64,000 bases of DNA from Eutreptiella sp. 'Long Island Sound 2002' (taxonomy: Eukaryota; Protista; Euglenida), in assembly GCA_964036045.1 (NCBI GenBank), contig OZ038379.1:24118001-24182000 (forward strand), given 5' to 3'. The notes below the pieces were generated by a model. It searched no databases, was not told the DNA's origin, and saw only the letters and a program-made list of their open reading frames with translations. This document shows, in pieces, positions 5,038-25,949 of the stretch (positions within the stretch are counted from its first letter, which is position 1; each line of letters starts with the position of its first letter). A program made the translations under genes and the position numbers.

Positions 5038-7968
5038 CTAGGGCGGGGGAGCGTAGGGGTTGTGGGCCATGGCCACTCGGGGGTCGTGGGGGTCCCCCGA
5101 GTACGGGTAGGGCAGGAGGGGGGCTGCTGCATGGTGGTCGTGGCGGCTGGAAAGCGCTTGTGGCTCATCGCGGTACGCGCTACGACGCCTCGGCGGCGGG
5201 CTGTCGCGGCGATGGCCTGGGGTGCGGCGGCGGGACGGGGACCGGTCCGAGCGGCGGGGGCTGTACCTGCGCTGATATTTGGAGTCTGGTTCTCCGTCCG
5301 ATCCCGACGTTGCCGTAAGGTCCACCTGATCGTCAGGGTCCCGTGGACGGCGCTGCTTCCCGCGGCTTCCCCGATGAGTCTTCCGGGGCGGATGGTCTCG
5401 GTCAGGGTCAGGCACCCAGGGCGTGAACGGTTGTTTCTTCGATTCGGCCCACGTCACTCGCCAGCCACGAGCCGTGTGTTGCCTCGTCAGTCGCATGCCG
5501 CGCTCGTACTCTGCTGGTCGGATTCCGACGATTGTGAACTTGGATGTATGGTTCAATTGTTCTTCAGTAATGGAGGAAAGGCCTGCACCAAATTTATCCC
5601 GAAGGATACCACCGAGGAGTCCTGCATCAACTTCACCGGACGGCGGATCGTCGACTTCTTGCCAGCCGACCCACAGGGCTTTCGAGTAAACTTGCGTATC
5701 GATTTTTTGGGGTGTATACCCCTTCTTTTTCGCTGCGCCCTGTGCCTGGTTGGCGGCTGCAGCTTCTGATGGGGAGGTGGCTGGGCTGGCGGAAACCCGC
5801 TGGACTGCAGGGGGGTTGGAGAGGAAGGAGCGCAGGACTTCCGCGATGCCGGGCAGGCTGGGCGCGTGGCTGTGGACCCAGGCCCACTGCTCCCGGATCG
5901 GCGACTGCGGGAGGGTGTTGACCTTCGCGCCGTACTGGCGGAAGAGCTGGAGGTGGAGCGCGTGCGCAACCTCGTCCTCACAGCCCTTGGGGATCTCCGG
6001 GATCCACTCCAGCAGGTCGGTCAGGGCGGTATCAGCAGGCGACGGCAGAGACGGCGGCGGCTGGGCGGTCGCGCCCGGTGCCCGAAAGGCAGAGACCGCC
6101 CTCGGCTTAGGGATCGGGTCCGGGACAGCGAACGACAGTTCGGGCGCACGCGCAGGGGCCTCCCGGGCCGGCACGGCGCCTGGCGCGGCCATAGCCCTAC
6201 GGAGGACGTCGGCCAATTCCTCGAGGTTGGGTGCCTGGGGCGAGGTGAGAACTGCTGCGGCGAGGATGACCGGCACGAGGACCAGGAACTGCTGAGAGCC
6301 GGGGGGAGGCAGCTCGAATGAAGCCGGAACGGTACTACGCACGGCGTTGGCGAATGCCGGCGGCGTGGACTGGAGGCCGTGGAGCCTGGTGGCGATGGAC
6401 AGGAGGGGGGGTACCGACCTGATGAAGTTGTTGAGCCTAACGGCTTCGGTCTGCCGCTGTGCCGCGGCGCAACGCTGGGCCTGCTGCTGGGCATTATCCC
6501 GTTCGGTGCGCACCGTGTCCAGATCCCGCGTGAGGGACTCCAGGTCGCCCCGTGCCACGGCCAGCTCCCGTCGTTGGGCCTCATACTCGTCATGCAATTG
6601 AGCGTAGTCGGTGGAGTAGGCCGTGACATCCAGGTCCGGGACGAAAGGCTCCCCCACCTGGGAGGGGCTGGGGGGGGCCGACCCGACGGCCGGGGTCGGT
6701 GACTCCGGAGGCGTGGGGTCTCCGGCAGCCGGTGGTACCTGGGAGGCAGGCTCTGGGAGATTGAAAGAAAGCCTTGTCTGTTCGGGCAACAGTGATGAAG
6801 GCGACGGTTCGGACCCTGAGGGGGTGGGCTTGCCCTGGGCCTTGTACAGGGCTGACGCCGGGGTGAACGCCGCCGTGGCGAACAGAGTGCCGGCGGGGCT
6901 GGGCGCTGCTTGCCCTTTGGTGAGGTAAGGTGCGTGGCTGGGCGGCGTGAGCGGGGGCGGGTTGGCGGTGTCGGCGATGCCGGCCTGCAGCAGGGCGAAA
7001 GTGGGGGCTGTGGCCCAGGTTTGCTCGCCAGCCTGCTCGATCTGATGCAGCAGCTCCACGCTGCGGATCGGCAAGATCGAGCATTCGAGCAGCGGCCGCA
7101 GCTGCTCGGGGGTCCACATGCCCTTGTTGGCGAGGGCGGGGGGTGTGGGAACGGGGGCTGGCGTGTACTGTCCTGTGAGGCAGACGGAGGAGGCCCACGC
7201 CAGGAGTCCGAACTTCAGCGGGACGAGGTCTGCCGTCGGGATATGGGCTGCCTGCAGGACGGCATGCACGTCGTTGGGTAGCGCCCAAAAGGCCGCAACT
7301 ACCTCTCGGGTGCGGAGGCGGTCCCATGACGGTCTGAGGTGGGGGGCAAGGAACTGGCTGATGGGCTTGTGGATCTTGTGGGAGACCTTCTGGCTTTGGA
7401 TGTCCGGAGGGCCGGCAGTGTCGACGGGCGGTGGCTGTTCGCGGGCTGTGTACAGGCCCTTGAAGACTTGGCTGCGGAGACGTGACGCCGAGATTGGGGC
7501 ATGGCTTGGGCTCCACCGCGTGACGAGAGCCGCTGTGAGGGCCTCAGGGTCCTTGGAGATATACTCCAGCAGTGGGCCTCCTTGTACCAGCGACAGGGGG
7601 ACGTGTTCGATGACCTTCGTGTCAGACGGGCCTGCGGCGACTGTTACGGTGGCTGTGAGCAGGAGCCCCCGCGGCGTCCACACCCCCGTCACCGCTGTAA
7701 TAGCCTGGATGTCGCCGTTGGCAGCCGTCCATCGCAGGGCATCACACAAGTCAGCCAGGGCGGGGTCGGTGGCCTGGATAGCCGTATCTGCCGCTTCCAG
7801 TGCGTCATCCTTCAGCATGTCCAGCTCTCGCAGCAGACGGTCAGCATCGTCGGACTGGGCGATGTCCATCAGAAACATGGGGAACGGCCCCCGACGAATG
7901 GCGCCGCCTCGACCGGTGTCGGGGGCGGGAGAGGGGGTGTCCTGGGACGGTGTTGAGCGGTCTGACAT
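5038..7968 (-). CDS. LINE ORF1 protein (976 aa from first ATG): coiled coil, putative RRM-like domain, Arg/Ser-rich tail
   Basis: The 990-codon ORF in the track starts at a TTG; the first ATG is at 7968. It sits directly upstream of ORF2. Heptad-like segment YAQLHDEYEAQRRELAVARGDLESLTRDLDTVRTERDNAQQQAQ (~6420-6610), KALWVGWQ...FTIVGI...GWRVTWAESKK (~5430-5690) and SPRRS/SPSRRR/SPPPRRRS tail. Confidence 0.8.
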   Translation of the reverse strand: MSDRSTPSQDTPSPAPDTGRGGAIRRGPFPMFLMDIAQSDDADRLLRELDMLKDDALEAADTAIQATDPALADLCDALRWTAANGDIQAITAVTGVWTPRGLLLTATVTVAAGPSDTKVIEHVPLSLVQGGPLLEYISKDPEALTAALVTRWSPSHAPISASRLRSQVFKGLYTAREQPPPVDTAGPPDIQSQKVSHKIHKPISQFLAPHLRPSWDRLRTREVVAAFWALPNDVHAVLQAAHIPTADLVPLKFGLLAWASSVCLTGQYTPAPVPTPPALANKGMWTPEQLRPLLECSILPIRSVELLHQIEQAGEQTWATAPTFALLQAGIADTANPPPLTPPSHAPYLTKGQAAPSPAGTLFATAAFTPASALYKAQGKPTPSGSEPSPSSLLPEQTRLSFNLPEPASQVPPAAGDPTPPESPTPAVGSAPPSPSQVGEPFVPDLDVTAYSTDYAQLHDEYEAQRRELAVARGDLESLTRDLDTVRTERDNAQQQAQRCAAAQRQTEAVRLNNFIRSVPPLLSIATRLHGLQSTPPAFANAVRSTVPASFELPPPGSQQFLVLVPVILAAAVLTSPQAPNLEELADVLRRAMAAPGAVPAREAPARAPELSFAVPDPIPKPRAVSAFRAPGATAQPPPSLPSPADTALTDLLEWIPEIPKGCEDEVAHALHLQLFRQYGAKVNTLPQSPIREQWAWVHSHAPSLPGIAEVLRSFLSNPPAVQRVSASPATSPSEAAAANQAQGAAKKKGYTPQKIDTQVYSKALWVGWQEVDDPPSGEVDAGLLGGILRDKFGAGLSSITEEQLNHTSKFTIVGIRPAEYERGMRLTRQHTARGWRVTWAESKKQPFTPWVPDPDRDHPPRKTHRGSRGKQRRPRDPDDQVDLTATSGSDGEPDSKYQRRYSPRRSDRSPSRRRTPGHRRDSPPPRRRSAYRDEPQALSSRHDHHAAAPLLPYPYSGDPHDPRVAMAHNPYAPPP

Positions 7969-8740: not shown

Positions 8741-11700
8741 TGAGGCAGTGCGTTGCAGAGGTTGCACTGTCCGCTGCCCCCAGGCAGAGGCAGTGAGGCA
8801 GTGCATTGCAAGAGTTCGAACTGCCCACTGCCCCAGGGCAGTGAGGTAGTGCATTGCAGGAGTTGCACTATCCACTGCTCCCAAGCAGTGGGGCAGTGCA
8901 TTGCAGGAGTTCCACTGCCCACTGCCCCCAGGCAGTGAGACAGCGCATTGCAGGAGTTCCACTGCCTACTGATGTGGGACAGTGAGGCAGTGCATTGCAG
9001 GAGTTGCACTGTCCACTGCCCCCAAGCAGTGGGGCAGTGCATTGCAGGAGTTCCACTGCCCACTGCCCCCGGGCGGTGAGGCAGTGCATTGCAGGGGGTC
9101 CACTGTCCACTGCCCCAGGGCAGTGAGGCAGTGCATTGCAAGAGTTGCACTGCCCGCTGCCCCCAAGCAGTGGGGCAGTGCATTGCAGGAGTTGCAGTTG
9201 CACTGCCCACTGCCCCCAGGCAGTGAGGCAGTGCATTGCAGGAGCTGGAGTTGCACTGCCCACTGCCCCCAGGCAGTGAGGCAGTGCATTGCAAGAGTTG
9301 CACTGCCTACTGCCCCCAGGCAGTGGGGCAGTGCATTGCGGGAGTTGCACTGCCTACTGCCCCGAGGCAGCGACGCAGTGCAATGCAGGAGTTGCACTGT
9401 CCACTGCCCCCAGGGCAGTGAGGCAGTGCAATACAGGAGTTGCACTGTCCACTGCCCCCAGGGCAGTGAGGCAGTGCATTGCAGGAGTTGCACTGTCCAC
9501 TGCCCCCAGGCAGTGAGGCACTGCATTGCAGGAGTTCCGCTGCCCACTGCCCCCAGGCAGTGGGGCAGTGCATTGCAGGAGTTCCACTGCCCACTGCCCC
9601 CAGGGCAGTGAGGCAGTGCATTGCGGGAGTTGCACTGCCTACTGCCCCCAGGCAGTGGGGCAGTGCATTGCAGGAGTTCCACTGCCCACTGCCCCCAGGC
9701 AGCGAGGCAGTGCAATGCAGGAGTTGCACTGTCCACTGCCCCCAGGGCAGTGAGGCAGTGCAATGCAGGAGTTGCACTGTCCACTGCCCCCAGGGCAGTG
9801 AGGCAGTGCATTGCAAGAGTTGCACTGTCCACTGCCCCCAGGCAGTTAGGCAGTGCATTGCAGGAGTTCCACTGCCCACTGCCCCCAGGGCAGTGAGGCA
9901 GTGCATTGCAGGAGTTGCACTGCCCACTGCCCCCAGGCAGTGAGGCAGTGCATTGCAGGAGTTGCACTGCCCACTGCCCCCAAGCAGTGCGGCAGTGTAT
10001 TGCAGGAGTTGCACTGCCCACTGACCCAGGGCAGTGAGGCAGTGCATTGCAGAGGTTGCACTGTCCGCTGCCCCCAGGCAGTGAGGCAGTGCTTTGCAAG
10101 AGTTCCACTGCCCACTGCCCCAGGGCAGTGGGGTAGTGGATTGCAGGAGTTCCACTGCCCACTGCTCTGGGACAGTGAGGCAGTGCATTGCAGGAGTTCC
10201 ACTGCCCACTGCCCCCGGGCGGTGAGGCAGTGCATTGCAGGGGGTCCACTGCCCACTGCCCCAGGGCAGTGAGGCAGTGCATTGCAAGAGTTGCACTGCC
10301 CGCTGCCCCCAAGCAGTGGGGCAGTGCATTGCAGGAGTTGCAGTTGCACTGCCCACTGCCCCCAGGCAGTGAGGCAGTGCATTGCAGGAGCTGGAGTTGC
10401 ACTGCCCACTGCCCCCAGGCAGTGAGGCACTGCATTGCAAGAGTTGCACTGCCTACTGCCCCCAGGCAGTGGGGCAGTGCATTGCGGGAGTTGCACTGCC
10501 TACTGCCCCGAGGCAGCGACGCAGTGCAATGCAGGAGTTGCACTGTCCACTGCCCCCAGGGCAGTGAGGCAGTGCATTGCAGGAGTTGCACTGTCCACTG
10601 CCCCCAGGCAGTGAGGCAGTGCATTGCAGGAGTTCCGCTGCCCACTGCCCCCAGGCAGTGCGGCAGTGCATTGCGGAAGTTTCACTGCCCACTGCCCCCA
10701 GGGCAGTGAGGCAGTGCATTGCGGGAGTTGCACTGCCTACTGCCCCCAGGCAGTGGGGCAGTGCATTGCAGGAGTTCCACTGCCCACTGCCCCCAGGCAG
10801 CGAGGCAGTGCAATGCAGGAGTTGCACTGTCCACTGCCCCCAGGGCAGTGAGGCAGTGCAATGCAGGAGTTGCACTGTCCACTGCCCCCAGGGCAGTGAG
10901 GCAGTGCATTGCAGGAGTTGCACTGTCCACTGCCCCCAGGCAGTTAGGCAGTGCATTGCAGGAGTTCCACTGCCCACTGCCCCCAGGGCAGTGAGGCAGT
11001 GCATTGCAGGAGTTGCACTGCCCACTGCCCCCAGGCAGTGAGGCAGTGCATTGCAGGAGTTGGAGTTGCACTGCCCACTGCCCCCAGGCAGTGAGGCAGT
11101 GCTTTGCAGGAGTTGCACTGCCCACTGCCCCCAAGCAGTGCGGCAGTGTATTGCAGGAGTTGCACTGCCCACTGACCCAGGGCAGTGAGGCAGTGCATTG
11201 CAGAGGTTGCACTGTCCGCTGCCCCCAGGCAGTGAGGCAGTGCTTTGCAAGAGTTCCACTGCCCACTGCCCCAGGGCAGTGGGGTAGTGGATTGCAGGAG
11301 TTCCACTGCCCACTGCTCTGGGACAGTGAGGCAGTGCATTGCAGGAGTTGCACTGCCCGCTGCCCCCAGGCAGTGGGGCAGTGCATTGCAGGAGTTCCAC
11401 TGCCCACTGCCCCCAGGCAGTGAGGCAGTGCATTGCAGGAGTTGCACTGCCCACTGCCCCCAGGCAGTGCGGCAGTGCGTGCCGGAGTTTCACGGCCCAC
11501 TGCCCCAGGGCATTGAGGCGGTGCATTGCAGGAGTTGCACTGTCCACTGCCCCCAGGCAGTGAGGCAGTGCATTGCAGGAGTTGCAGTGCCCACTGCCCC
11601 CAGGCAGCGGGGCAGTGCATTGCAAGAGTTCCACTGCCCACTGCCCCCAGGCAGTGAGGCAGTGCATTGCAGGAGTTGCATGGCCCACGCCCCCAGGCAG

Positions 11701-13245
11701 TGAGGCGGTGCATTGCAGGAGTTCCACTGCCCACTGCCCCCAGGCAGTGAGGCAGTGCATTGCAGGAGCTACACTGCCCACTGCCCCCAGGCAGAGGCAG
11801 TGCATTGTAGGAGTTCCACTGCCCACTGCCCCCAGGGCAGTGAGGCAGTGCATTGCAGAGGTGGACTGCCCACTGCCCCCCGGCAGTGAGGCCGTGCATT
11901 GAAGAAGTTGCACCGCCTACTGCCCCCAGGCAGTGAGGCGGTGCATTGCAGGAGTTGGAGTTGCACTGCCCACTGCCCCCAGGCAGTGAGGCAGTGCATT
12001 GCAGGAGTTGCACTGCCCACTGCCCCCAGGCAGTGCGGCAGTGTATTGCAGGAGTTGCACTGCCCACTTACCCAGGGCAGTGAGGCAGTGCATTGCAGAG
12101 GTTGCACTGTCCGCTGCCCCCAGGCAGTGAGGCAGTGCATTGCAAGAGTTCCACTGCCCACTGCCCCAGGGCAGTGAGGTAGTGCATTGCAGGAGTTCCA
12201 CTGCCCACTGCTCTGGGACAGTGAGGCAGTGCATTGCAGGAGTTGCACTGTCCACTGCCCCCAAGCAGTGGGGCAGTGCATTGCAGGAGTTCCACTGCCC
12301 ACTGCCCCCAGGCAGTGAGGCAGTGCATTGCAGGAGGTTCACTGCCCACTGCCCTAGGGCAGTGAGGCAGTGCGTTGCAAGAATTGCACTGCCCACTGCC
12401 CCCAGGCAGTGGGACAGTGCATTGCAGGAGTTCCACTGCCCACTGCCCCCAGGCAGTGCGGCGGTGCATTGCAGGAGCTGCCCTGCCCACGGCCCCCCAG
12501 GCAGTGCGGCAGTGCATTGCAGGAGTTCCGCTGCCCACTGCCCCGGGGCAGTGAGGCACTGCATTGCAGAAGTTGCACTGCCCGCTGCCCCCAGGCAGCG
12601 GGGCAGTGCATTGCGGGAGTTGCACTGCCCACCGCCCCCCAGGCAGTGCGGCAGTGCATTGCAGGAGTTGCACTGCCCACTGCCCCAGACAGTGAGGCAG
12701 TGCATTGCAGGAGGTCCACTGCCCACTGCCCCCAGGCAGTGAGGCAGTGCTTTGCAGGAGTTCCACTGCCCACTGCCCCCAGGCGGTGCGGCAGTGCGTT
12801 GCAGGAGTTCCACTGCCCACTGTCCCCAGGCAGTGAGGTGTTGCATTGCAGGAGTTGCACTACCCACTGCCCCCAGGCAGTGAGGCAGTGCATTGCAGGA
12901 GTTCCACTGCCTACTGCCCGAGGGCAGTGAGGCAATGCATTGCAGGAGTTGCACTGCCCACTGCCCCCAGGCAATGCGGCCGTGTATTGCAGGAGTTGCA
13001 CTGCCCACTGCCCCCAGGCAGTAAGGCAGTGCATTGCAGGTGGTCCACTGCCCACTGCCCCAGGGCAGTGAGGCAGTGCATTGCCGAAGTTGCACTGTCC
13101 ACTGCCCCCAGGCAGTGAGGCAGTTCATTGCAGGAGTTCCACTGCCAACTGCCCCAGGGCAATGCGGCAGTGCGAAGCACGATTTCCATTGCCCACAGCC
13201 CCCAGGCTGCCTGGCAGTGCGTTACACTGCCCACTGCCCCCTGCC
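8741..13245. repeat. 47-bp tandem satellite, consensus GGCAGTGAGGCAGTGCATTGCAGGAGTTGCACTGCCCACTGCCCCCA, internally palindromic
   Basis: About 95 head-to-tail degenerate copies are visible. Each unit has GGCAGTG-A-GGCAGTG facing CACTGCC-CACTGCC. Confidence 0.97.
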
Positions 13246-13544: not shown

Positions 13545-14345
13545 TCGGCACACCACACCACACCACACCACACCACACCACACCACACCACACGACACCA
13601 CACAACACCAGCCATATCATGCCACGCTACACTGTACAACACAACACAATATGACATGACATGACATGACATGATATGACACAGCATGACATGACGTGAC
13701 AATACCTAGTACAGTACATGGTACATTGCAACAGCCCAGAAGCCTAGACAACACAGGGTTGTACAGCAGCACACAACAAAACCACAGGATGCATCAAAAC
13801 ACATCGCAACACAACGTAATGCACTGCAACGCAACACAACACAACACAACGCAACACTGCACAGCACCACACGGCGTGGCACGGCGCAGCGCAACACAAC
13901 ACAACACAACACAACACAACACAACACAACACAACACAACACAACACAACACAACACAACACAACACAACACAACACAACACAACACAACACAACACAAC
14001 ACAACGGTGTGGTGTGGTGTGGTGTGGTATGGTGTCGTGTGGTGTGGTGTGGTGTGGTGTGGTGTGGTGTGGTGTGGTGTGGTGTGGTGTGGTGTGGTGT
14101 GGTGTGGTGTGGTGTGGTGTGGTGTGGTGTGGTGTGGTGGATACAACAAGGCACAACAAAATGCAACCAATCGGCACCAGAAGATCCTCAGGACACAACA
14201 TGACACAACACAGCAGGACATACACCAGCACCACAACATGACACGACAGGGCCACAACACAATGCAATGCGACATGACACGACACAACACGACACAACAC
14301 GACAGAATACGACACATCGCAACCTGATACAACACACCACACACC
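13545..14345. repeat. Compound pentanucleotide microsatellite: (CACCA)n, (CATGA)n, (CACAA)n, (GGTGT)n, (CACGA)n-like
   Basis: Directly visible runs, e.g. (CACAA)n ~13895-14003 abutting (GGTGT)n ~14005-14140. Confidence 0.95.
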
Positions 14346-14350
14346 ACTCT

Positions 14351-14526
14351 GGCAAGGAAGCGTGGCAGCCGACGATTCAGCATCGTCACTTGATTAGAGT
14401 GTATTATTGCCTCGCGGGAACTGTACAAATACTAGACAAGTATTTAAGAAATCAATTTCCCCACACACATGATTTTAATAATGCCACATGGGTCTGTAGT
14501 TCTGTCTTTTAGACTCAGTGAGTTTC
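14351..14526. repeat. ~176-bp dispersed repeat, copy A
   Basis: About 95% identical by eye to 16690-16866 (GGCAAGGAAGCGTGGCAGCC...AGACTCAsTGAGTTTC). Confidence 0.9.
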
Positions 14527-15344
14527 AGCCCTCCGGCAGCAGTGCACAAGGGCATGCTTTGGCTGGGAGAATTAGAAAGAGTGAATTCACCTCCGGCATA
14601 TCTTACTGCAATCATCTGGGCCCTCGCTGTAGCGGTGACACAGCACCACCCTCAGTCTTCCATCCCAGCCACTACTCATCCTCATGCCGCCTCCTACAGA
14701 TGCTTTAGAGGTGTGGCAGCTGACAGCCAAAGCCGCAGTGCTGTGGGACTCAGCAGTAGAAATTGAACGCTAATGAGGACCGCCACAATATGCCTGACCT
14801 CAGATGTGTTGTGCTTGCAGCGTGCAGGGCAGGCAGGGGACACACCGACATGGTATATGTTCGAGGGGGCAAGGAGCATGGCGCTACTATGTGGACCCCA
14901 GCATCCCTTACAGCTGCCAGACAGGGGCACCCCCTGTGTGACGGGCAGCCTCTGTCTGGCAGCTGCCTCTGGCAGTTGGCACAACACCGCAGCCTGTGCA
15001 GCACCTTGTGGTGGTGATGTGCTGCGCTGTGCGTGTTCCTCCCCAGCCCCCCCCCCGCCCCCACAGCATCCTGCCCCAAGTGCACCACTGGGGGCGCCCC
15101 TCACAGCTGGGTTTTCGGCGACTGCATGCCGTGCATCTGAGGGACCGGGGGCTGGCACAGCTGTTCGCTGGTTCATTGCGGGACAGAATTGGTGAAGAAT
15201 TTGTGGCACATTCAATTTCATCCACTATGTTGATGCGACAACATGAAGACAAAACCACCATGATGGGCTGAAAGCTTCGGCAAGTGCCCATGGTACCCAA
15301 CCCACACACAAACAGAGTCACAACACGACACCACACTGACACAG

Positions 15345-15460
15345 CGGAACACGACACGACACGACACGACACGACACGACACGACCCGACCCGACCCGAC
15401 ACGACACGACATGACACGACACGACACTACACGACACGACATGACACAACACGGCACGAC
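15345..15460. repeat. (CACGA)n/(CCCGA)n pentamer microsatellite just inside an intron
   Basis: Visible run immediately after the GAG|GTGCGT donor of channel paralogue 1. Confidence 0.9.
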
Positions 15461-15464
15461 GCAC

Positions 15465-16034
15465 CTCAATTCCCGCCAGCGGTCCTGCAAGAATGGCAGA
15501 AACCAGTAGGAGTGTCACCGGAATTACGACAACGGCAAGAATCACAAACTTTCTAATGGCCTCACCGAGTCTCATCGATTCAGCGTGCACACGCATCCGC
15601 CTGCCGATGGGAAGGAAGGCTTGGCCGCCTATCATACTCAGCACAACAACCGCCACGGAGATCCCCCAGGCGGCCACAACAATCACTGCGATGCGGCCAA
15701 AAGTGTTGGTGGGTACCCTACTGGTGAAGGCGCTGTTGGCGTTGACAAGGATACCGGCAATGTAGTAGAATCCGTCCATGTACGGCCAGTCCTCCAGCCA
15801 AGCCAACACCCCTCCAAGGCCGGCAGACGTGATGAAGAGGACTGTGGGGACCACAATCAATATAAATAGAAACAGCTGGAGCGAAGCCTTGTAGGGGCAC
15901 TGCTGCGGAGGCCCAACTTCCGCTGGGACAGCCCCGGCGGACTGCGAATCCTGCTGGCATGGTGGATCCCAGTCCAGTCTGGCATCCCAGCCCCCATGTA
16001 CGGAAGTCACTGGCGTTGTGAAGGTTGCATCCAC
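15465..16034 (-). CDS. Two-pore-domain channel-like protein, paralogue 1 (exon with TM1-P1-TM2-TM3; downstream exon not found)
   Basis: LQLFLFILIVVPTVLFITSAGLGGVLAWLEDWPYMDGFYYIAGILVNANSAFTSRVPTNTFGRIAV...AGPLAGIE, then donor GAG|GTGCGT at 15464. About 60% identical to paralogue 2 over P1-TM3 (manual count 62/103). 5' end uncertain. Confidence 0.7.
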
Positions 16035-16689
16035 TGGTGGGCATGGCAGCTGTTCAAATAGTGGCGGCGGGGGAGTGGGGGCCAGATCAGTGGGTGCCGA
16101 CTCCAGTCCATCAGCGCTGTCATCAGCGACCTATCGGCAGGTGCGTGGTGGGCACAGAGAAGCAGAGCGGATCCACAAAGGTGTGAAAGAATTATGAAAC
16201 GGCTGTCAACAGGCTTGCCAAGACTAAGTTGAGAATTGATTGGCCATTTCGCCAAAATTGATGGGGGAAAGTGCCTCACCTTCCATATTGGCGGGCGTGT
16301 CTGGCTCACGAGGTGAGGCTGGGTTGCTGCATCTCCCTTGTCCCCAAGTGGTTTTGGTGGTAGCAGTCGGCCAAAGAGCCATTGAAACGGCTGTCAAACT
16401 GGCAGCACGCCTCCATCTGGAGGCTATCCATCTTGGTGCGGACAATCAGGTGCCATGTGGTTGCAATCCGCTTGGCCAGTGCTTGTGCAGTGGGAAACCC
16501 TCCGAGGGGACGAATATTGCGCCACCTTGCTCATGCCCTTTGGCGGGTAAAAGCCCACAAGAGACTGAGTTTCCCTGCCCACCCCTCCCGAATGTATAAA
16601 TTTCCCTACCGGCCACAGGCATGGTGGCCACACCACCTGCTGAACACGGGGTGGGTGGAGGGCTAAAAGGCCCAGGGAGGGGGGGGCAT

Positions 16690-16866
16690 GGCAAGGAAGC
16701 GTGGCAGCCGACGATTCAGTATTGTCACTTGATTAGAGTGTATTATTGCCTCGCGGGGTACTGTACAAATACTAGACAAGTATTTAAGAAATCAATTTCC
16801 CCATACACATGATTTTAATAATGGCACATGGGTCTGTATTTCTGTCTTTTAGACTCACTGAGTTTC
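16690..16866. repeat. ~176-bp dispersed repeat, copy B
   Basis: Matches 14351-14526. Confidence 0.9.
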
Positions 16867-17062
16867 TGACCCCACCCGGCATGCCCTTCACTCGCCCACC
16901 CACATAGAGTCATGGGGCATCCAGAAATGGATACATGCTCGCCACAGGCCTTGTGCACGCCTGGCGGACACTCCTTGCAATGCAAAAGGTGATGAGGGGC
17001 GGAGCAATTGGAGCAACAGAAAACAGTGTGCAGACACAATGGTTGCCCAGGCACACACATAC

Positions 17063-18740
17063 CACAGTCTGCGCTTTGGGATTGACGTAACCGCCGAAGC
17101 CCAACTTTTCACAGATGATGGGGCAGATCGAGAGGCCGAGGGTTGCGAGGGCGAGCCCCATGAGCCCCAGAGACCAGGCATCAAACATGAGTGCGACAAG
17201 TTTGCCCCAGTGCGTTTGAGGCTCCTCTGCGGTCAAGGGCACATGGAGGGCCGTCATGAGAGAGCACAGCCACCAAAACCCGTGGTCCCATGTCCAGCCC
17301 TCCATCCCTGCCAAGGGCCCTGCAAGGATGGCGCAGACCAGGAGCAGGTTCACGGGGATGATAATGAGGGTGAGCAGGAATAGCTTGCGGATGGCCCTCT
17401 TGTAGCAGTAGCTGTCATAGTGCACACGGATGATGCGCCCGATGGGGACAAAGACGGGCCCGGCAACCATGCTCAGCACCACCACCGCCACCGAGACGCC
17501 CCAGGAGGCAATGATGACCGCTGCAAAACGCCCGGCAGTGGTATCAGGTTGCACGGTGGTGAAAACACTGTTGGCATTGACCATGATGGCGCAGATGTAA
17601 TAGAACCTGGGGCCAATGCACGGAGAATGATCACTGGCGTGAACCCCTTTTGTAGGCACTGGAAAGGTTGATGAGTGGGTTGCGGTACTTGGTCGCCTGG
17701 ATTCGTGACATAAAAAAAAAGCCCCAGTGTGTGCGGTGCGCAGATTGTTCAAGCAGGGGATGCACTGAGCGATGCGTTCACAGCGGACGGGCATTCAAAA
17801 CGGGTGCTCGTGCACATGCCTCATGCAAAGAGCTTCCCCGGTGGACAGTCAGCAGGACTGAGATTCCTATACCCAAGGTACAGGAGGAGCAGCTCTGGGT
17901 TCGATCATGGGAACAAGTTTGGTGGGTTGTTGGGAGGACGAAGCCTCCTAGGCACAATGGTGTGAGGCGCAGTGGGCAGGGACAGGACTTGGGTTGGATG
18001 GATGTCCGTCATGCCTCAGTGCAACGGGACGGTGTCGTGCCCGGGTGGGGTGGGGGGTCTAGCCGCCCCCTCCTTACCTACTTCTTTCAATGGAGCGACA
18101 CACGGCTCCTTCGTTTGCCCATCTGTAGCTCGGGTTGAAAGGGATGTCCCAACACGCACCTGGCCACAGCCCACCCTGATCCACATCCATGATTCGAGGG
18201 GTCAAGAAGGGGGAGCATAGATGCAGGGACCCTTGCTTGTCCAGGCTAAAATGCCAGAAGGGAAGGATGCAGGAAGCAGGGAACAGAGTACCCGTCCATG
18301 AATGCCCAGCCTTCAATAGCCGCCAGGATGCCCCCCAACGCCACGCTTGCAATCCCAATGAACAGCGGCATCAGGAACACGATAAACACGAACTCCTGCA
18401 GCACCGCCTTCCTGAGGGACTGCCGTTCCAGGGAAGACTCCAGAGGCTGTGAACTGGCGCTCAAGTCAAGATCTGCATGGTGGCCCGAATCGGGGTCCGA
18501 GATGGTGTCCATCTGAGAGTTGGAGTTGGTGGAGGAGGGGGCATAGTAACCGGGGCCTGCAGGTCGGTAATGGTGGTCTGGGGCCCATGGGCCCGTGGAT
18601 GATGCGGATAACGGGTTGGCAGTGGCCGCAGGTGCCCATGGGCTGATGGGCAGTTCTGAGGCAGGCGCGTGGGTAGCATCTGCAGCCGGGGCCCATTGCC
18701 TAGGTGCAGCCCTTGGTGCAGCCGCGTAAGAAGCGAACAT
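17063..18740 (-). CDS. Two-pore-domain (4TM/2P) channel-like protein, paralogue 2; join(18292-18740, 17063-17606)
   Basis: ATG at 18740. A GT-AG intron at 17607-18291 (685 nt, GG|GTACTC...CCCAG|G) restores EGWAFMDGFYYICAIMVNANSVFT. The second repeat reads EGWTWDHGFWWLCSLMTALHVPLTAEEPQTHWGK. Probable further donor GTG|GTATGT at 17062; otherwise the frame reads to a stop at 16910. Confidence 0.85.
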
Positions 18741-19489
18741 GTGCTACTGGGGGCAGCCCTGCAGTCAGGCTGTGTTATCGAGCCGAGGTTGCATCAGCAA
18801 TACTGCAGGAAATGGCATGTGCTGATTTGACAAAGCCCATATGCGCAACATGCAAAGTGCTTCGCACATTGTCCCACAGAACCCCCCCCCCCCTGCCCTC
18901 CCCTTTGGGCCCCCCTTTGAGCAGGCAGTTGGGGAGTTGGATTAGTGGGTGAGGTTCGAAGAAGTTGGACAAACGGCATGGGGGGCTTGTGGAGGCAAGG
19001 GTGAAGAGTATTGGGCAACAAAGTCTCTGCCCTAGGAACACGTTAGGCATGGTAGAAGCTACAATGTAACAAGAAGGAATCTATAGTACTTTACTTTAGA
19101 GCATCCACTAACTTTAATGCATCTAAAACAAAAACACCGAATACCTGCACATTTGGGACATATGATGTGTGATCACTTCATCATTGTGCTATGTTATGCC
19201 CTATTCTGCTTTGTGTCTTTTGTCTTTGTTCCCTTGGTTGCAACTCACAAGTCTTCTTGTTTGCTGTGGCTGGTACAATGGTTTACATGGTCAATGGGAG
19301 CTTGGGGATAGCATGCATGCCTGACTTGGGGATGTCAATGTGTCTAGCTGGGCTCAAAAGGCACCTGAATGGTGTTTGTGGGTCGATTTTTGTTTTGCCG
19401 GATGTTTTGGCGAAAATCGTTGTACTGCACTGCGCATGTCAGCAAGCTCACACTGGGCATAGTCCAGTTGCTCCTGCAACTCATTAATT

Positions 19490-20330
19490 TTGCTGTGGGC
19501 AGCGATTGGAATTGATGGTGTTCCTTTGTGGCACAGCCATGTTGTGAGCATATCCTGCTCCACATGTGTTGCCCTAGATGGGACTGGACAGCATGCCATG
19601 GATCGGTACTTCATCGCTGCCGTACTACGTGGTCATGACAATCTACACATGTTGACCGCCAGCCTTCGCCATATTGCACCACTCCTGGGGATGTTGTCCG
19701 CGACTATTCGTGTCCGACATGTCCATTGGCTACAACACACAAATGCAATGCATTGGTAAAGGAAATAATACCCGTGGCACAACACCCACCGCACATCCTG
19801 CATGGTGTTTGCAATGTGTTGTTTACAATTGTTATTCCCCTGATTGAGAACCTAATCATGGATGATTTGCAGTGGACAACCACAACCACACAGCAGTTCC
19901 TAGGGAATTTGGGGATGGAAAATCTTTCCGCGGATGACCCAGAAAAAGAAGACATTGGAGGACCATTGTGGAGGCAATGTGCTTGTCTCAGAAACAACTA
20001 ATGCACAATGGGACATTGCGTGACATTCACACACTGATAAACACACTATTTATTCATATACTAACTACATTGGATGCTGCCCATAAACTTGAGCCTCTCA
20101 GTGACCAAGAGGTTGCATTGGTTGAGGCGGCATGTGAGCACACAAGGCAACTCTTCGTGACTTCGAATGGCACCGTGTGGGGCCATGTGTGGGTGTACCA
20201 TGTTCCTCAGTCTTTTCGCAAATGGAAAACCATGTTTCCCTTCTTGGGGTATGGTGTGGAGGGACGCCATCGTGCATTGAAACAAGAAATTTGGCTCAGT
20301 GCACGCGGGTAATGGAGAGGTGCTATCGTG
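19490..20330 (+). mobile_element. Decayed DDE transposase of CMC (CACTA/Mirage/Chapaev)/Transib type
   Basis: Three frames in order give AIGIDGVPLW, PPHILHGV and HVWVYHVPQSFRKWKTMFPFLGYGVEGRHRALK (H-x4-H followed by a putative catalytic E). Two frameshifts and a stop at 20310. Confidence 0.55.
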
Positions 20331-21951
20331 GGATTTGTTTCTGTTGTGCGCCAGTCATTGGTGCAACTTGACCTTCTATCTATGGGTGTGGCACTTGTTG
20401 GCCGCACGTATACTGTGACTAAATCCGCTAGAGCGCGGTTCCACGGCTTTTGTGCATACATGAAGCAAAAGATGCAACATAGTGGACGTCATGCCAATTG
20501 TTAATGCTTCATTCACTTGTCTTCTTAATGCCATGTGCATTGGTGGCATGTTTGGTTCTGTGCATTACAACAAACTTTTTGCCTCACGGCAGCAACTTTT
20601 TATGGGTATAGATTCCAAAAACCACAACATTTTTGCCTCTTTCCAAATCTGAAATTCATCATTCCTCGGAGTGCAAAAATTGTACACATGATGCACAATA
20701 TGACCCCAATTCACATGCCCATTCCACCAAAAAAAAAACCGCGCGCAAAACGCAGCTATGCAGCAAAAGTTATGAAACAATAGACTTTTTGCAGGTGCCA
20801 ACGGACATTTTTACCGCTATTGAAAATGATGCACATGTATATTTATGTATGGCACGGTAGAAAGGATCCCGGGTCACATGCCCCGGAAATCTGCCGATAT
20901 CCTCGGGCCCTAATGGCCCGGATATAAGAATTGGGCGTAATGCCCCGGATATCTGCCCTGCATCTCCAGGCACATATCCGGGGCATAGGCCGAATTTTTG
21001 TGTAGTATTTTTGCTCTTTGCCGTGTCTCCTTTAATGACATCATGGGTGGTATACTTAAGCTTAAGCATAAGCATATGCTTAAGGTTATGCATTCGCTTA
21101 AGCAGCTAATGAAAGCTGCATAAGCAGGTAGTGCATGCCTTAGGTGGGTGGTGTTGAATGTTGCCTTGAGTTTATCCAATTGGACTATCGAATGTTGCGT
21201 AGACTGGCCTCACGTGGGTGGGGTGTGTTCAACGGTGGTGATATGGCTTAGACTGATCCAAAACATTTGACAGTGAGGGGAGGGGGTTTTCCAAAGTGAT
21301 CCACGGACCACTTTGTCTCCTTCAATAATTGTACACCACATATAGCGGCAGGCTACAAGCCAAAGGCACAAGAAATCTTTTTGCGGGAGTTCACTCCACC
21401 GATGCCGTGTGACTTGAAAGGCTGCATTACCTACACTGCGACTACTTGTTGTTCGATACATTCTTCAAACCCCAAAGGTGTAAAGGCAAACCTAGGCCCG
21501 GGGCAACATGTGATGGGCTGTGCCTCGTACAATCCGGGGGCAAAGGTTAGGCGTTCTATCCCACACAGGCAAGAAATTGCGGTTCCGAGGGGAAACTTCC
21601 AAACGACTAACCGGTGTAAAACAGAGCAATGCTAACAAGGTGCATGCCGGTTGTGCCATGCGGCGAAAGGCCAAGGTTCCACACTTGTGCTTACAAGGAG
21701 CCAACAAGCCATTGCCAATGCTACTATTTTGTGCAAGAGACTATTGTGACATGTCTTTCCATCAATGAATGGCACACTTGCAAACTTGTTGGGACGGACG
21801 GAGGGAGGGAGGGTCCGAGGGATCAAGGGAGGGAGTGTGTGGGTTATGCCATCGCTCAGCGTGTACGAAACATTTTCTCAAGGGTCGCAAGCGGTCGGAA
21901 GTGGTCGTAGGCGGTGGGCTCCCCCTGGGGACTGGGCAACCCACTCCGCGG

Positions 21952-22052
21952 CGGATCGGAGGTCCGGGAACCCCCCCCCCCCCCCCCAAGGATCGGCGCG
22001 GATCGTGGATTGGAGGTCCGGCAAGCCCCCCCCCCCCCCCACTGTTGCCTAG
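21952..22052. repeat. Short repeat family (poly-C dimer ending CTGTTGCCTAG); second copy at 23328-23422
   Basis: Both copies contain CAAGGATyGGCGCGGATCGTGGA...poly-C...CTGTTGCCTAG in the same orientation. Confidence 0.6.
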
Positions 22053-24659
22053 GGGTGCGGATCAAAATTTTCAAAAACCACCAAAACCAGCCAAAACACA
22101 TGGGTCAAAGGCATGGAAGGCATAGCAAGCAAACACAACACCAAGCAAAAAAACATCCACGCATGCATTGAAATTTGTTTTTCAAATTTCTGTACGGCAA
22201 CCTTGGTGCCGGTATCTCCAGGCAATGACGACAACCACATTGTGGTGTGGCATGACGGTGTAGTGGTTCATAGTAGGCAAACAAGTCGCCGCAGAAGCAC
22301 TAGCAAGGGTGGAGCACCGTGCCCCAGTCCTTTGCCATGGCCACCAAAACACACACCCGTGCCACGTACCGGCCAATGACAGACCAGGGTGGCGGGCAAA
22401 CCTCATGACAGGACGAAGCACGCCAAGTAAATAGACCCGACGGCGGCAAGCATTAGCATTTGTGCAGTGGGCCAAATGGTAACACAAAGGACGCGTTGTT
22501 TGAGGGATGCGCGGTTTGAAGGTCGCCGGTTAGAACCCTGGTACACACTAGAGCGGGCAGCGAGCAGCGGGAGGCTCGGCCCAAGGTCCAACCGAGGGAC
22601 CAGATAACGAGGGCCCTGGATGGCCAAGCATGCATGGTGATGGAAGTGGGGACAATATTTGTTGTTGGGGGTGGACGCCGCGGAGCCGCCTCCCATCCCT
22701 GGGGACAGAGACACCCGGACGGGTGCAGAGGTGTACACCGCCTAGAGGTGGCACCAAACCCAATGCCAATCGTCTTAGGCTGGGCGCTCCACGTGAGGCG
22801 CTCCACCTAACCAAGCGCTCCACGTGAGACACATGTGCCACTGGCCCAGAAACCCCCGAAACCGAAACGGAAACTAAAACGAACCCCCCCCCCCTACCAA
22901 CCTCACCCACCCACCCCACCCCTTCCACTGAGGTCATGGAAGTCCCCTGGTTGCTTTTGGGGGCTCTTGTCAATTCAGCCCTCCGGTGCGGGGGGGGGGG
23001 GTCCAGCTAAGGGGCTCTATCGACAACCCCTTGAAGTGAAAGTCCGCCCACCCCAGGGGCCTATGCAGTATTTGTCTTCCAGTCACAGATGCGTGCTTCT
23101 GCGTATGCCATTCCTTCGCGTGGATTGTTGTGTACACAGGCTGCTAAGAGAAGAGTGTCTCACAGCCTTTCACTTCTTTCCCAAAGGACCTCTTTGCATG
23201 TTTCCGGGGGTGTGTAAAGACGAATCCCCCGTGACCTGTACTCCATTGGACAATTTATGTTGCAAGTTCAGTCAATTGGCAACCTATCTCCTCACTATAC
23301 CTTGACCGTGGTAATAGATCGTACCATGGATCGTGGATCGAAGCTCAAGAACCCCCACCCCCAAGGATTGGCGCGGATCGTGGAACGGAGCTCAAGAACC
23401 CCCCCCCCCCCCTGTTGCCTAGTCCCCCCTCTCCCTTTGTAGGGCTAGGGCACTGCACATTGCATACCCGTTGAAAGAGTCAAACACACAAAGCAAGGAA
23501 GTCCTTAGAATATTGGATCATCAGGCTTTTGTGCCCTGAACATGCGCAAACTGTTGCGGAGAGAGATGCCAGTATTGATTGACAACTCATCGTGAACACA
23601 CTAAGCCACACCTAGCAAGGTGCACTACACAACCCCATGGGTCCGAAGCTGGAGTAAGATAACTGTGAGTTACCAAATGCCTTGTGTCAGCAACAGAAAA
23701 TTGGAAATGCACCTCACGAAACAAAGAAGTGGTTGGTGGATGTTTTGCATGAAAAACACGCAATTCCAACAACAACGGGTTGGTGGCCAGAGCGGTTAGG
23801 TATTGACCCCATCCCATGCTGGACAGCCTAGACACGCATGGCTAGAAGGGTTGGCAACCTTTGGAATACATCGACCTGGATAACTCGATGGTGTCCCTGC
23901 CAACCTGATAATCTGAAGGGTGGCGCGGTTGGGCCCACCAAGGCTCGGAAATGTTATCCGTCCCGGTGCAACCCCCCCCCCCCCCTGCCAACAGGTCGGG
24001 TCACAGATCAAACATGGAGGTGAAAATATACCCACCCTCCCAAAATGGATCAAAGAACATAAATCCACTGAAAGCCTTGATGCGGTGCATGTATTGCTAT
24101 AGGAGCTCCAACCTCACCAAGTCTTACGCCAATCTTCTAGCATTTCCATCAATGCAAATCAACTCTGCCGATCGTTCAAGGGAAATGTTTGGAGTTTGAT
24201 ACATTTGCATTGGCCTACAATTCTTGTTCCATCGGTCAACGGGAGGTGAATAGAGCTTGACGACTTTGAACTAGTTCCAACCAGGTTACATCCAATTTGT
24301 GCACTTCGTAGTTCATGGAATTGGGACAAACTGGATGTGCACACGATTGCGTAGAAAGGGTTGCACATTGCACCCAACACCCCGATGAGGCCAGGTGCAT
24401 AAAGATGCGGGAGGGGTACATCTTCACGCTTTCAAACCTTCTTCTTATCGAGTTGTGATGCTCCGACCCACGAAGGACAACAAGAGGCAGTGGACGGGTG
24501 GTGTGGGTCCAGCGGGTGTGTATACTGCCAAACGCATGGTTGGTGCTCCCCCTCATGTTGGTGGGGTGCCTTCCTTTGGGCGACAGTGGAATGAATAAAG
24601 ATTATTAGATTCACATCATTAGAGCATTGTGGCACATTTTGACACTGCACCCTGGCAAA

Positions 24660-25613
24660 TTATGTTGCGAAATGCCTCATAATAGGTGGGCTTGCTGAAG
24701 GGGTAGGGTGGGGTAGTTGGTAAACACCAAAATTGGGCAGTGTGGCACGAGTTGATGGTGCCTTTGGCCTACTACGGTAGCCCCCGAAGCGGAGGTGCTC
24801 CGACAATGTCGGAACAAGAGATGCCGCTATTGTCGCTAATGCGAGCCCAAGGACCCCCAAAGACCATGCATCGAACAATATAGAGACAATTTTGCCTCCA
24901 TGAGTGGTGGGGTTTCTATTGGTGAGTGGATTGGTCATCGCCGTCATAAGCGCAATCAACCACCAAAACCCATCGATCCAAGGCCAACCTTCAATGGCTG
25001 CAAGAGGGCCTGCTAGCACGGCTGCTGCTGCACACAGGACCGCAGGGACGAAAACGAAACATAGACCAAGTAGCTTGAGCACACACCATGCAAAACTTGT
25101 ATTGCTACGCCCAGAAGAGTGCACACGGAGAAAATTTGCAATGGGCGTGAACACAGGCCCGCCAATCATTGAGAGGAACACTATCAAGATCGAGATGCCC
25201 CAAGCCGCGGTAACTACAGCCATAACTTTCCCGAAGGCGGTCGTGGGGCTTTGATTGGTAAGGGGGTTGGTTGCATTCACGCAAATCGCTGCTACGTAAA
25301 AAAATCCATCGATGAACGCCCAGCTCTCAATAGCCGCCAATATACCCCCGAGGCCCAACCCGACAAGAAATAAGATGGCAGGCATAACCACGAGAATGAA
25401 CAACACCAATTGCAATATTGCTAAAGGTAGACTTTGATATTCCTCGAGTTCTTCTTCTGCCTCGATGTCCTGCACCTGGAATTGTGTCATGGGATGATCC
25501 AAATACCATGACGGAGAAAGGTGCACCGTTGGATAAAGAGCATCTTCGCCATGGCCGGGCATTAGCCCGTTTCTCAGACGTGCTGTGTCATTTTGGGAAA
25601 CATAAGAATACAT
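24660..25613 (-). CDS. Two-pore-domain (4TM/2P) channel-like protein, paralogue 3, intronless (317 aa from ATG 25613)
   Basis: Single ORF with four hydrophobic segments and two repeats, ESWAFIDGFFYVAAICVNATNPLTNQSPTTAFGK and EGWPWIDGFWWLIALMTAMTNPLTNRNPTTHGGK, matching the E-G-W-x-F-x-D-x-x-Y...P-x-T-x-x-G-K/R frame of K-channel pore modules. Confidence 0.88.
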   Translation of the reverse strand: MYSYVSQNDTARLRNGLMPGHGEDALYPTVHLSPSWYLDHPMTQFQVQDIEAEEELEEYQSLPLAILQLVLFILVVMPAILFLVGLGLGGILAAIESWAFIDGFFYVAAICVNATNPLTNQSPTTAFGKVMAVVTAAWGISILIVFLSMIGGPVFTPIANFLRVHSSGRSNTSFAWCVLKLLGLCFVFVPAVLCAAAAVLAGPLAAIEGWPWIDGFWWLIALMTAMTNPLTNRNPTTHGGKIVSILFDAWSLGVLGLALATIAASLVPTLSEHLRFGGYRSRPKAPSTRATLPNFGVYQLPHPTPSASPPIMRHFAT

Positions 25614-25949
25614 GGAAGCTTCTCGCAAATTGCCAAGTGACTCGCGATCAAGCAAAATGCTGCGGTGTGCGTAGAACGAGCAAGAAACTTCCAAAGGATT
25701 GATTTGTGTACCCTCTCAGCCTACTGGACGCATGATCATGTGTTTCGTCCGAGGATTCTGCTTTGCTCGGTGCTTACTTGCTCATGATCATGATACATAT
25801 CCATAGGACTAAAAGACAAATTGTCGTACACGGACAATCCATCACCCATACGCAGGCATGTACGCTACCCGGACACCTTCTCCCCCAATGCGCGGTCCGT
25901 ACGATGTTCTCTTGTGCTTGTCTTGGTGCTCAGTGTGCCCTTAGTCTTT

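Follow-up and report, generated by a model that had tools for sequence, protein, structure and literature searches.

The 64,000-nucleotide stretch of the euglenid Eutreptiella sp. 'Long Island Sound 2002' analysed in this study (assembly GCA_964036045.1, contig OZ038379.1, positions 24,118,001 to 24,182,000; the whole stretch is called the window, and coordinates are counted from its first letter) carries on its minus strand three homologous loci, g1, g2 and g3, related to K2P channels (potassium channels with two pore domains) and lacking the canonical T-x-G-Y-G sequence at the position of the selectivity filter. A first-pass annotation made from the letters alone had described them as three channel-like genes with four transmembrane (TM) segments and two pores (4TM/2P), and profile searches with a hidden Markov model (HMM) of the family placed the homology of the three loci far above chance (E = 4e-71 for g1, 1e-40 for the second exon of g2 and 9e-37 for g3). 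That description was right in substance, and our corrections concern the third gene, the role of the filter glycine and how far the family extends. Of the three loci in the window, two are complete 4TM/2P genes and the third is a fragment: g1 and g2 have the 4TM/2P topology, and g3 does not.

The gene g1 is one uninterrupted open reading frame (ORF) spanning 24660-25694, in which the first ATG lies at 25613, and the complete single-exon 4TM/2P gene (24660-25613), identified from the ORF, the family HMM (profile positions 3-232 of 238) and an AlphaFold2 (AF2) model, encodes 317 amino acids, a product identical to database protein P0001. A module composed of a TM helix, a pore helix of the form E-[SG]-W-x-[FW]-I-DGF, an eight-residue loop, the motif P-T-T-x-x-GK and another TM helix occurs twice in it. 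Pore helix 1 (ESW-A-F-I-DGFFY, 25281-25328), which corresponds to helix 51-62 of the model, is followed at the filter position by the P1 loop VNATNPLT (25257-25280), while pore helix 2 (EGW-P-W-I-DGFWW, 24945-24992), which aligns with the DAFWW of the Kv1.3 pore helix, leads into the P2 loop TAMTNPLT (24921-24944). The second gene, g2, was searched exon by exon, with its two exons taken separately. Exon 1 (18292-18740; E = 1.5e-12, profile positions 4-50) encodes the N-terminus, TM1 and the start of pore helix 1, ending in EGWAFMDG; a GT-AG intron of 685 nt in phase 2 (17607-18291) then splits the Gly codon of DG|F within pore helix 1, and exon 2 (16910-17606; profile positions 50-216) supplies the remainder of that helix, the P1 loop VNANSVFT (17558-17581), TM2, TM3, pore helix 2, the P2 loop TALHVPLT (17231-17254), TM4, a tail and the stop codon.

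The third locus, g3 (15465-16034; family HMM, profile positions 9-153 of 238, and tblastn), is a truncated copy containing only TM1, pore helix 1, the P1 loop VNANSAFT (15723-15746), TM2 and TM3. The loop strings of all three loci thus read as first reported, but the duplicated pore module once ascribed to all of them holds for g1 and g2 and fails for g3, which has a single pore. Homology stops at 15465 with the residues AGIE, followed by GAG|GTGCGT, a good donor-like site, and then by a pentanucleotide satellite, (CACGA)n at 15319-15460 in the tandem-repeat (TRF) output and (TCGTG)n on the g3 strand, which starts where the g3 homology ends. No second pore module for g3 was found within the 64 kb, either by tblastn at word size 2 or by the family HMM at maximum sensitivity in six frames, and the g3 ORF has no in-frame ATG upstream of TM1. 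Since DNA-run contigs of two separate studies show the same sequence on either side of the satellite, the truncation does not stem from an error of this assembly. Additionally, a 183-bp segment lying 3' of g2 (16689-16871) recurs downstream of g3 (14350-14531) with 94.5% identity by blastn. This pair appears to be the remnant of a duplicated unit or a product of local conversion, and because the segment recurs 3' of both g2 and g3, it suggests that the g3 unit formerly ended like g2 and has since lost its final ~430 bp of coding sequence. We therefore regard g3 as a likely gene fragment or pseudogene, probably non-functional. As to the proposal that differing filters reflect functional diversification, the differences between the paralogues are real, but g3 looks like a fragment and not like a diversified channel.

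A fourth paralogue, g4 (database protein P0002), lies on another contig of the same assembly (ctg10584_35x_l, L002 positions 2548-3087 and 5989-6900, in ENA ERZ25074135, where the window contig is ctg9829_38x_l). Its loops read VNANNPLT and TALTNPLT, and an intron of ~2.9 kb follows the AAIE of module 1. This intron and the g3 break after AGIE in module 2 fall at equivalent relative positions, and introns may recur at IE|GW in the euglenid g1-g4 clade. The paralogue cores are 42-60% identical, and the tails of g1-g4 are short, unconserved and without an EF-hand. The ratio of nonsynonymous to synonymous divergence (dN/dS) between the cores is ~0.15-0.5 where dS is estimable, the comparison of g1 with g3 not being computable, which indicates that the local paralogues are old duplicates under long-term constraint; since synonymous sites are near or beyond saturation, the ratio speaks for long-term constraint only and not for the present status of g3. 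A phylogeny of the homologues, proposed in the first-pass annotation as a check, placed the four sequences inside the family with NPLT-type loops and beside Eutreptiella proteins, branching as g1, then g4, then the pair of g2 and g3 (support 99/97 and 100/94), and by this tree the g1-g4 set is a lineage-specific duplication.

The genes of the window are not a local oddity, as shown by g4 on another contig and by relatives throughout the marine protists. An exhaustive HMMER search over 1.84 billion cluster representatives (clusters at 50% identity) retrieved 367 representatives with E <= 1e-3, of which 117 reached E <= 1e-10 and 8 reached E <= 1e-30. A word-index protein search with g1 and with the family profile returned the query alone, but it is uninformative on relatives because TM-rich words swamp the candidates. 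The few named members are two transcriptome proteins of Eutreptiella gymnastica, automatically named 'Potassium channel domain-containing protein', a protein of Pavlova sp. CCMP459 from the MMETSP collection, and KAK3244261.1 of Cymbomonas tetramitiformis, labelled 'EF-hand domain-containing'; the other members, from ENA, JGI/IMG and Logan assemblies, lie on short contigs (mostly 1-6 kb) and are either unnamed or labelled 'hypothetical proteins'. Among the named sequences, those nearest to the local genes come from the euglenid E. gymnastica, and, as far as these sequences tell, the family is widespread in marine protists, including euglenids, haptophytes, prasinophytes and many unnamed marine eukaryotes. 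A scan of IMG/VR with a nine-sequence alignment gave 21 pattern matches, none of which was confirmed by tblastn, a result that is uninformative as to an absence from viruses. The EF-hand name of the Cymbomonas member, together with an EF-hand match below threshold in P0023, suggests that some relatives may be Ca2+-regulated, as are the TPK channels. Full-text literature searches on the motif and on non-canonical tandem-pore channels of protists found no description of the family, which bears out the earlier supposition that it is expanded and uncharacterised; we take it as a real and conserved variant of the tandem-pore channel design that is apparently undescribed.

The conservation of the loop was assessed on 330 single modules taken from the best 150 of the 367 representatives. 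Their consensus, read from the pore helix, is E-G-W-S-F-x-D-G-F-L-Y-V-L-S-N-L-T-G-L-A-N-P-L-T-D-V-S-P-T-T-x-G-G-K, which gives the shared signature EGW-x-F-x-DGF ... G-L-x-N-P-L-T ... P-x-T-x-x-G-K. The Glu and Trp of the pore helix are conserved in 293/321 and 284/319 modules, the second Pro in 274/324 and the Gly before the Lys in 291/323; within the loop, Gly is found in 202/323 modules, Pro in 199/316, Leu in 228/324 and Thr in 165/324 (Val in 63), and the residue after P-L-T is Asp in 67, Ser in 59 and Asn in 55 of 323. The reported absence of the TxGYG filter extends to the whole family, since G[YF]G occurs in none of 318 modules and T-x-G-[YFL]-G-[DN] in only one of 318; there are 33 cases of G-L/M/G-G, nearly all of them inside loops of the G-L-G-N/T-P-L-T type, in which the second Gly occupies a variable position. 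The claim of a glycine-free filter needs a narrower scope: it holds for the local lineage but not for the family at large, given that the loop glycine conserved elsewhere is also gone in the g1-g4 euglenid clade. Being glycine-free is therefore a feature of the lineage, and being GYG-free a feature of the family.

The register of the replacement could be fixed in two ways. HMMER aligns P-L-T-[DNS] to G-Y-G-[DN] with a two-residue gap immediately before it, and the same register is obtained when counting back from the conserved P-x-T-x-x-G-K. Counting from the Trp of the pore helix to the conserved Pro confirms the two additional residues noted in the first reading, in agreement with the HMMER gap. 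Moreover, a Eutreptiella-like sequence from another sample (L003 1-2327; ENA ERZ28668931, NODE_6917) encodes at least 3.5 consecutive pore modules whose loops alternate between the ATNP[IY] type and the near-canonical TTGYT and TVGFT, and these T-T-G-Y-T and T-V-G-F-T strings sit exactly at the T-N-P-L-T positions. The L003 sequence, which may encode an 8TM/4P protein interrupted at 621-625 by a stop or frameshift, looks like an intermediate between GYG and NPLT filters. On the strength of the HMMER register and these near-canonical loops at the same positions, the family loop can be read as a derived K+ filter in which the second glycine was replaced first and then both. Some sub-clades, with relatives such as P0028, P0030, P0056, P0075, P0098 and P0122, have distinct loop types, including Q-L-G-G-G-M-x-L-T in the last module of a four-module sub-clade and E-[LI]-[ST]-x-T-[ND]-x-x-L-V in another, so several distinct conserved loop types exist within the family.

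The relationship to known channels emerged most clearly from profile comparisons. In a single-sequence search of the sequences in the Protein Data Bank (PDB), Kv1.3 and K2P3 were matched at E ~1e-3, and the Pfam domain Ion_trans_2 was found at E < 0.01 in just 8 of 41 relatives. A profile built from 66 two-module cores (A2) matched K2P10/TREK-2 at E = 7.5e-11 and TREK-1 at 1.5e-8, followed by TASK-1, THIK-1, TRAAK, TASK-2 and TWIK-1 and, more weakly, by NaK (E ~4e-3) and other single-module channels. The alignment with K2P spans pore helix 1, M2 and M3 and reaches into pore helix 2, with an I-E-G-W motif that is common to the TREK channels and matches the P2 of K2P. Judged by these matches, the family proteins are homologous to the tandem-pore K+ channels; in the comparison with Ion_trans_2, which the first-pass annotation had recommended, the local proteins stayed below the Pfam threshold.

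Structure prediction agrees with this assignment. The AF2 model of g1 residues 50-300, computed as a monomer (as were all AF2 models) from the A2 alignment, has a predicted local confidence (pLDDT) of 89.2 and a predicted TM-score (pTM) of 0.83, and consists of TM1 (13-47), a pore helix (51-62), a 14-residue loop, TM2 (77-101), a short helix, TM3 (125-159), a second pore helix (163-174), a second loop and TM4 (189-224), with the loops at pLDDT 95-98. The link between TM1 and pore helix 1 is just three residues long, a length that leaves no extracellular cap. A Foldseek search of the PDB with this model returned K2P structures for all of the top 50 matches (probability 1.00). With VIA-align, which works independently of Foldseek, the best superpositions were on adjacent pore domains of TPC3 and AtTPC1 (Z 11.1), on Cav1.2 (10.4) and on TASK-3 (9.2), followed by TASK-2 and TWIK-2; the K2P matches begin at pore helix 1 and omit TM1. 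Because K2P monomers are domain-swapped through the cap, this swap may explain the omission. According to the first-pass annotation, the channel reading would have to be abandoned if the model lacked a re-entrant pore helix or if a non-channel family fitted better; the model has both re-entrant pore helices, and its neighbours are P-loop channels. A non-channel helical bundle was rejected, all sequence and structure neighbours being P-loop cation channels of the tetrameric type.

Further information on assembly came from relatives with more modules. Of the best 150 of the 367 representatives, 100 are two-module proteins and 20 combine four modules in one chain, and these 8TM/4P chains include P0006, P0013, P0014, P0017 and P0018. 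In P0006, module 1 resembles module 3 and module 2 resembles module 4, which makes it a covalent dimer of the two-module unit. In its AF2 model (pLDDT 86.1, pTM 0.82), 373 of 456 residues could be superposed on the Nav1.7 pore domains, all four included (Z 13.5, rmsd 4.4 A), and the fit to Cav1.2 (Z 12.2), Cav2.2, Cav3 and Cav1.1 is similar. The existence of four-module single chains and the predicted likeness of P0006 to the Nav/Cav pore suggest a functional unit of four modules arranged about one axis, in which case g1 and g2 would probably act as dimers.

From the homology, the fold and the family-wide conservation we infer how the proteins may assemble, conduct and select ions. The products of g1, g2 and g4 would be divergent cap-less tandem-pore subunits derived from the K2P/TPK lineage, each contributing two TM-pore helix-loop-TM modules, and two subunits would place four modules round a central pore. 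In canonical channels, the filter glycines allow the backbone to extend so that its carbonyls make up the four K+ sites. Here T-x-G-Y-G-D is replaced by [TG]-x-x-N-P-L-T-[DNS], with P-L-T standing for G-Y-G and the link from pore helix to filter longer by two residues; because both K+-site glycines are gone and one is replaced by proline, classical K+ selectivity has likely been lost. By analogy with NaK, CNG and NirBac, the pore would be a non-selective or differently selective cation pathway. A cation channel seems likeliest because of the threonine at the base of the loop in g1, the Asp after P-L-T in many members, the pore-helix geometry and the NirBac precedent, and non-selective or differently selective cation conduction is the most likely activity by this analogy. 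On balance, we lean towards g1, g2 and g4 being dimeric tandem-pore P-loop channels with a filter that is not K+-selective and that probably forms a non-selective cation pathway. A broader proposal, which we consider quite possible if short of probable, is that G-L-x-N-P-L-T is a previously unrecognised filter with an ion preference of its own within the tetrameric P-loop superfamily, built both as two-module dimers and as four-module chains, the latter representing a transition from K2P-like to four-domain architecture independent of that of Nav/Cav.

Several results weigh against the cation-channel interpretation. The Pfam scores for Ion_trans_2 (PF07885) fall below the gathering score (18.8 bits, with E = 1.5e-3, and 18.6 bits, against 22.5 bits), the Foldseek E-value is modest (4e-3, with a TM-score of ~0.43), and the VIA-align Z-scores of 11-13.5 lie within a range that the tool itself warns occurs for helical proteins. 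No RNA holding the loci was found: all runs that hold them are DNA-like contig sets from two studies, and none of the locus is present in three small possible RNA runs. Besides, the replacement of both glycines, one of them by proline, could equally occlude the pore. The proteins would then be non-conducting or modulatory subunits whose loop plugs the pore and which serve as sensors, scaffolds or 'silent' partners of other channels, a view in keeping with the loss of both glycines, the inserted proline and the differences among the paralogue loops (NPLT, SVFT, SAFT, VPLT). We consider it unlikely, as the Pro, Leu and Thr of the loop are among the best conserved residues of the family and are modelled with high confidence, and as four-module chains favour a complete homomeric four-fold unit over a partner subunit. 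Outright decay is a far more remote prospect. The truncation of g3 without an upstream ATG, the missing RNA and a satellite-rich locus would fit function-less pseudogenes of K2P-like genes, but the frames of g1 and g2 are intact over all family-conserved positions, the g2 intron is a clean GT-AG intron, dN/dS is below 1, and hundreds of clusters in several phyla, transcriptome-derived proteins among them, retain the loop signature. For g1 and g2, this family-wide loop conservation led us to reject the pseudogene reading.

The permeant itself can also be questioned. Since the conserved Asn-Pro and Thr of the loop are polar and uncharged and the acidic residue after P-L-T is not invariant, a re-engineered loop lined by Asn and Thr side chains might pass anions, protons, water or a small solute; this has a small probability, given that all structure and sequence neighbours are cation channels, that many members have Asp after P-L-T and that the pore-helix dipole geometry of the P-loop channel fold favours cations. 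It is about as improbable that the proteins are still K+-selective tandem-pore channels despite their unusual filter. Their closest sequence relatives are K2P channels, g1 keeps in T-N-P-L-T a Thr equivalent to the filter threonine, and alternate modules of the Eutreptiella-like relatives read TTGYT or TVGFT, all of which would suit K+ selectivity; yet GYG or GFG is found in 0/318 modules and TxGxG[DN] in 1/318, selectivity is tied to TxxTxGY/FG (PMC13715775), and loss of the motif has yielded non-selective channels (PMC4607889).

Comparison with characterized systems helps to place the proposed cation channels. Animal K2P channels (TREK-2/K2P10, TREK-1, TASK-1, THIK-1) are the best relatives among solved structures and have in common with the family the 4TM/2P subunit, a pore helix opening with I-E-G-W and an inner helix opening with P-x-T-x-x-G-K, whereas the family differs in having no cap, no G-[YFL]-G in either loop, loops longer by two residues and an Ion_trans_2 score below threshold. 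The signature T-x-x-T-x-G-[YFL]-G of K2P and TPK channels is absent from the g1 and g2 loops. The cap-less tandem-pore architecture is also that of plant and algal TPK channels and of the viral Kpov channels (PMC13715775; PMC8619664), and some relatives, like the TPKs, have C-terminal EF-hand-like segments, although g1-g4 do not. Kpov is K+ selective, and K+ selectivity was linked to the TxxTxGY/FG signature (PMC13715775). In algal TPKs the second pore ranges 'to the complete absence' of GYGD (PMC8619664), which is a partial precedent, although a conserved replacement loop in both pores is not described there; at least the first pore of TPK and Kpov retains GYG(D), while the present family has an NPLT-type loop in both, and this loop is itself conserved. 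The family can be said to descend from cap-less tandem-pore K+ channels of the TPK/Kpov type and would work like them, yet we do not file it as a K2P/TPK K+ channel, because the defining filter signature is missing and the Pfam threshold is not reached.

Functional precedent for a lost K+ selectivity is provided by NaK, CNG and NirBac, which likewise pair the pore module of a K channel with a P-loop that is altered or unrelated; NirBac has a KirBac-like scaffold with unrelated P-loops and is functionally non-selective (PMC4607889). These channels differ from the family in being single-module tetramers, in the T-V-G-D-G retained by NaK and in loops unlike N-P-L-T, and the NaK/CNG type, with one 2TM or 6TM module and T-[VI]-G-x-x, does not suit g1 and g2, which have two modules per chain and no loop glycine. 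Among larger channels, adjacent TPC pore domains fit the two-module model best and Nav1.7 and Cav1.2 fit the four-module P0006, but the family has neither voltage-sensor domains nor a second pore helix after the loop, and the A2 profile search of the PDB gave no sequence match to TPC or Nav/Cav. We rejected TPC membership because the proteins consist of pore modules only and the similarity is limited to pore domains. An Asn-Asn-Pro stretch occurs in filter I of TPC channels, and its likeness to the N-P of the family loop may be a lead. The Trk/Ktr/HKT transporters (SKT) have four M-P-M modules in one chain and one Gly per loop, as in some relatives (consensus T-G-L); however, the KtrB structural match is weak (Z 8.0, rmsd 11 A), KtrB lies outside the top 50 for the four-module model, and the window genes have two modules and no loop glycine, and on these grounds we set SKT membership aside as improbable.

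To our knowledge, TxGYG is among the most conserved functional motifs, and every studied departure from it (NaK, CNG, HCN, NirBac) has been informative on ion selectivity. The present case involves a whole family of at least 367 clusters at 50% identity in which the K2P pore scaffold is kept and a different, proline-containing loop is conserved. Pfam misses this family and the few database names are automatic, so members called 'potassium channel domain-containing protein' should not be presumed to be K+ channels. The core of ~250 residues makes these proteins amenable to the bilayer and heterologous-expression methods already applied to viral K2P-like channels, and the four-module fusions illustrate, in nature, the passage from two-module subunits to single-chain pseudo-tetramers.

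The window is eukaryotic sequence containing both satellites detected by TRF and spliced genes, and an Rfam scan of it gave no matches. A 47-bp satellite array of ~93 copies (8788-13207, 86% match) lies immediately downstream of the gene cluster, and its translated frames give rise to long spurious ORFs. Pentanucleotide arrays (CACAC, CAACA, GGTGT, CACGA) occur at 13549-14139 and 15319-15460; words of the CACGA-type array reach a depth of ~1e5 in DNA runs against a background of ~30, which places it among the most abundant repeats of the genome. At the other end of the window, a 14-bp satellite, CACAGCGCACTCCA, occupies 62403-64000 with ~114 copies at 97% match and an extreme GC skew (-0.46), and continues past the window end.

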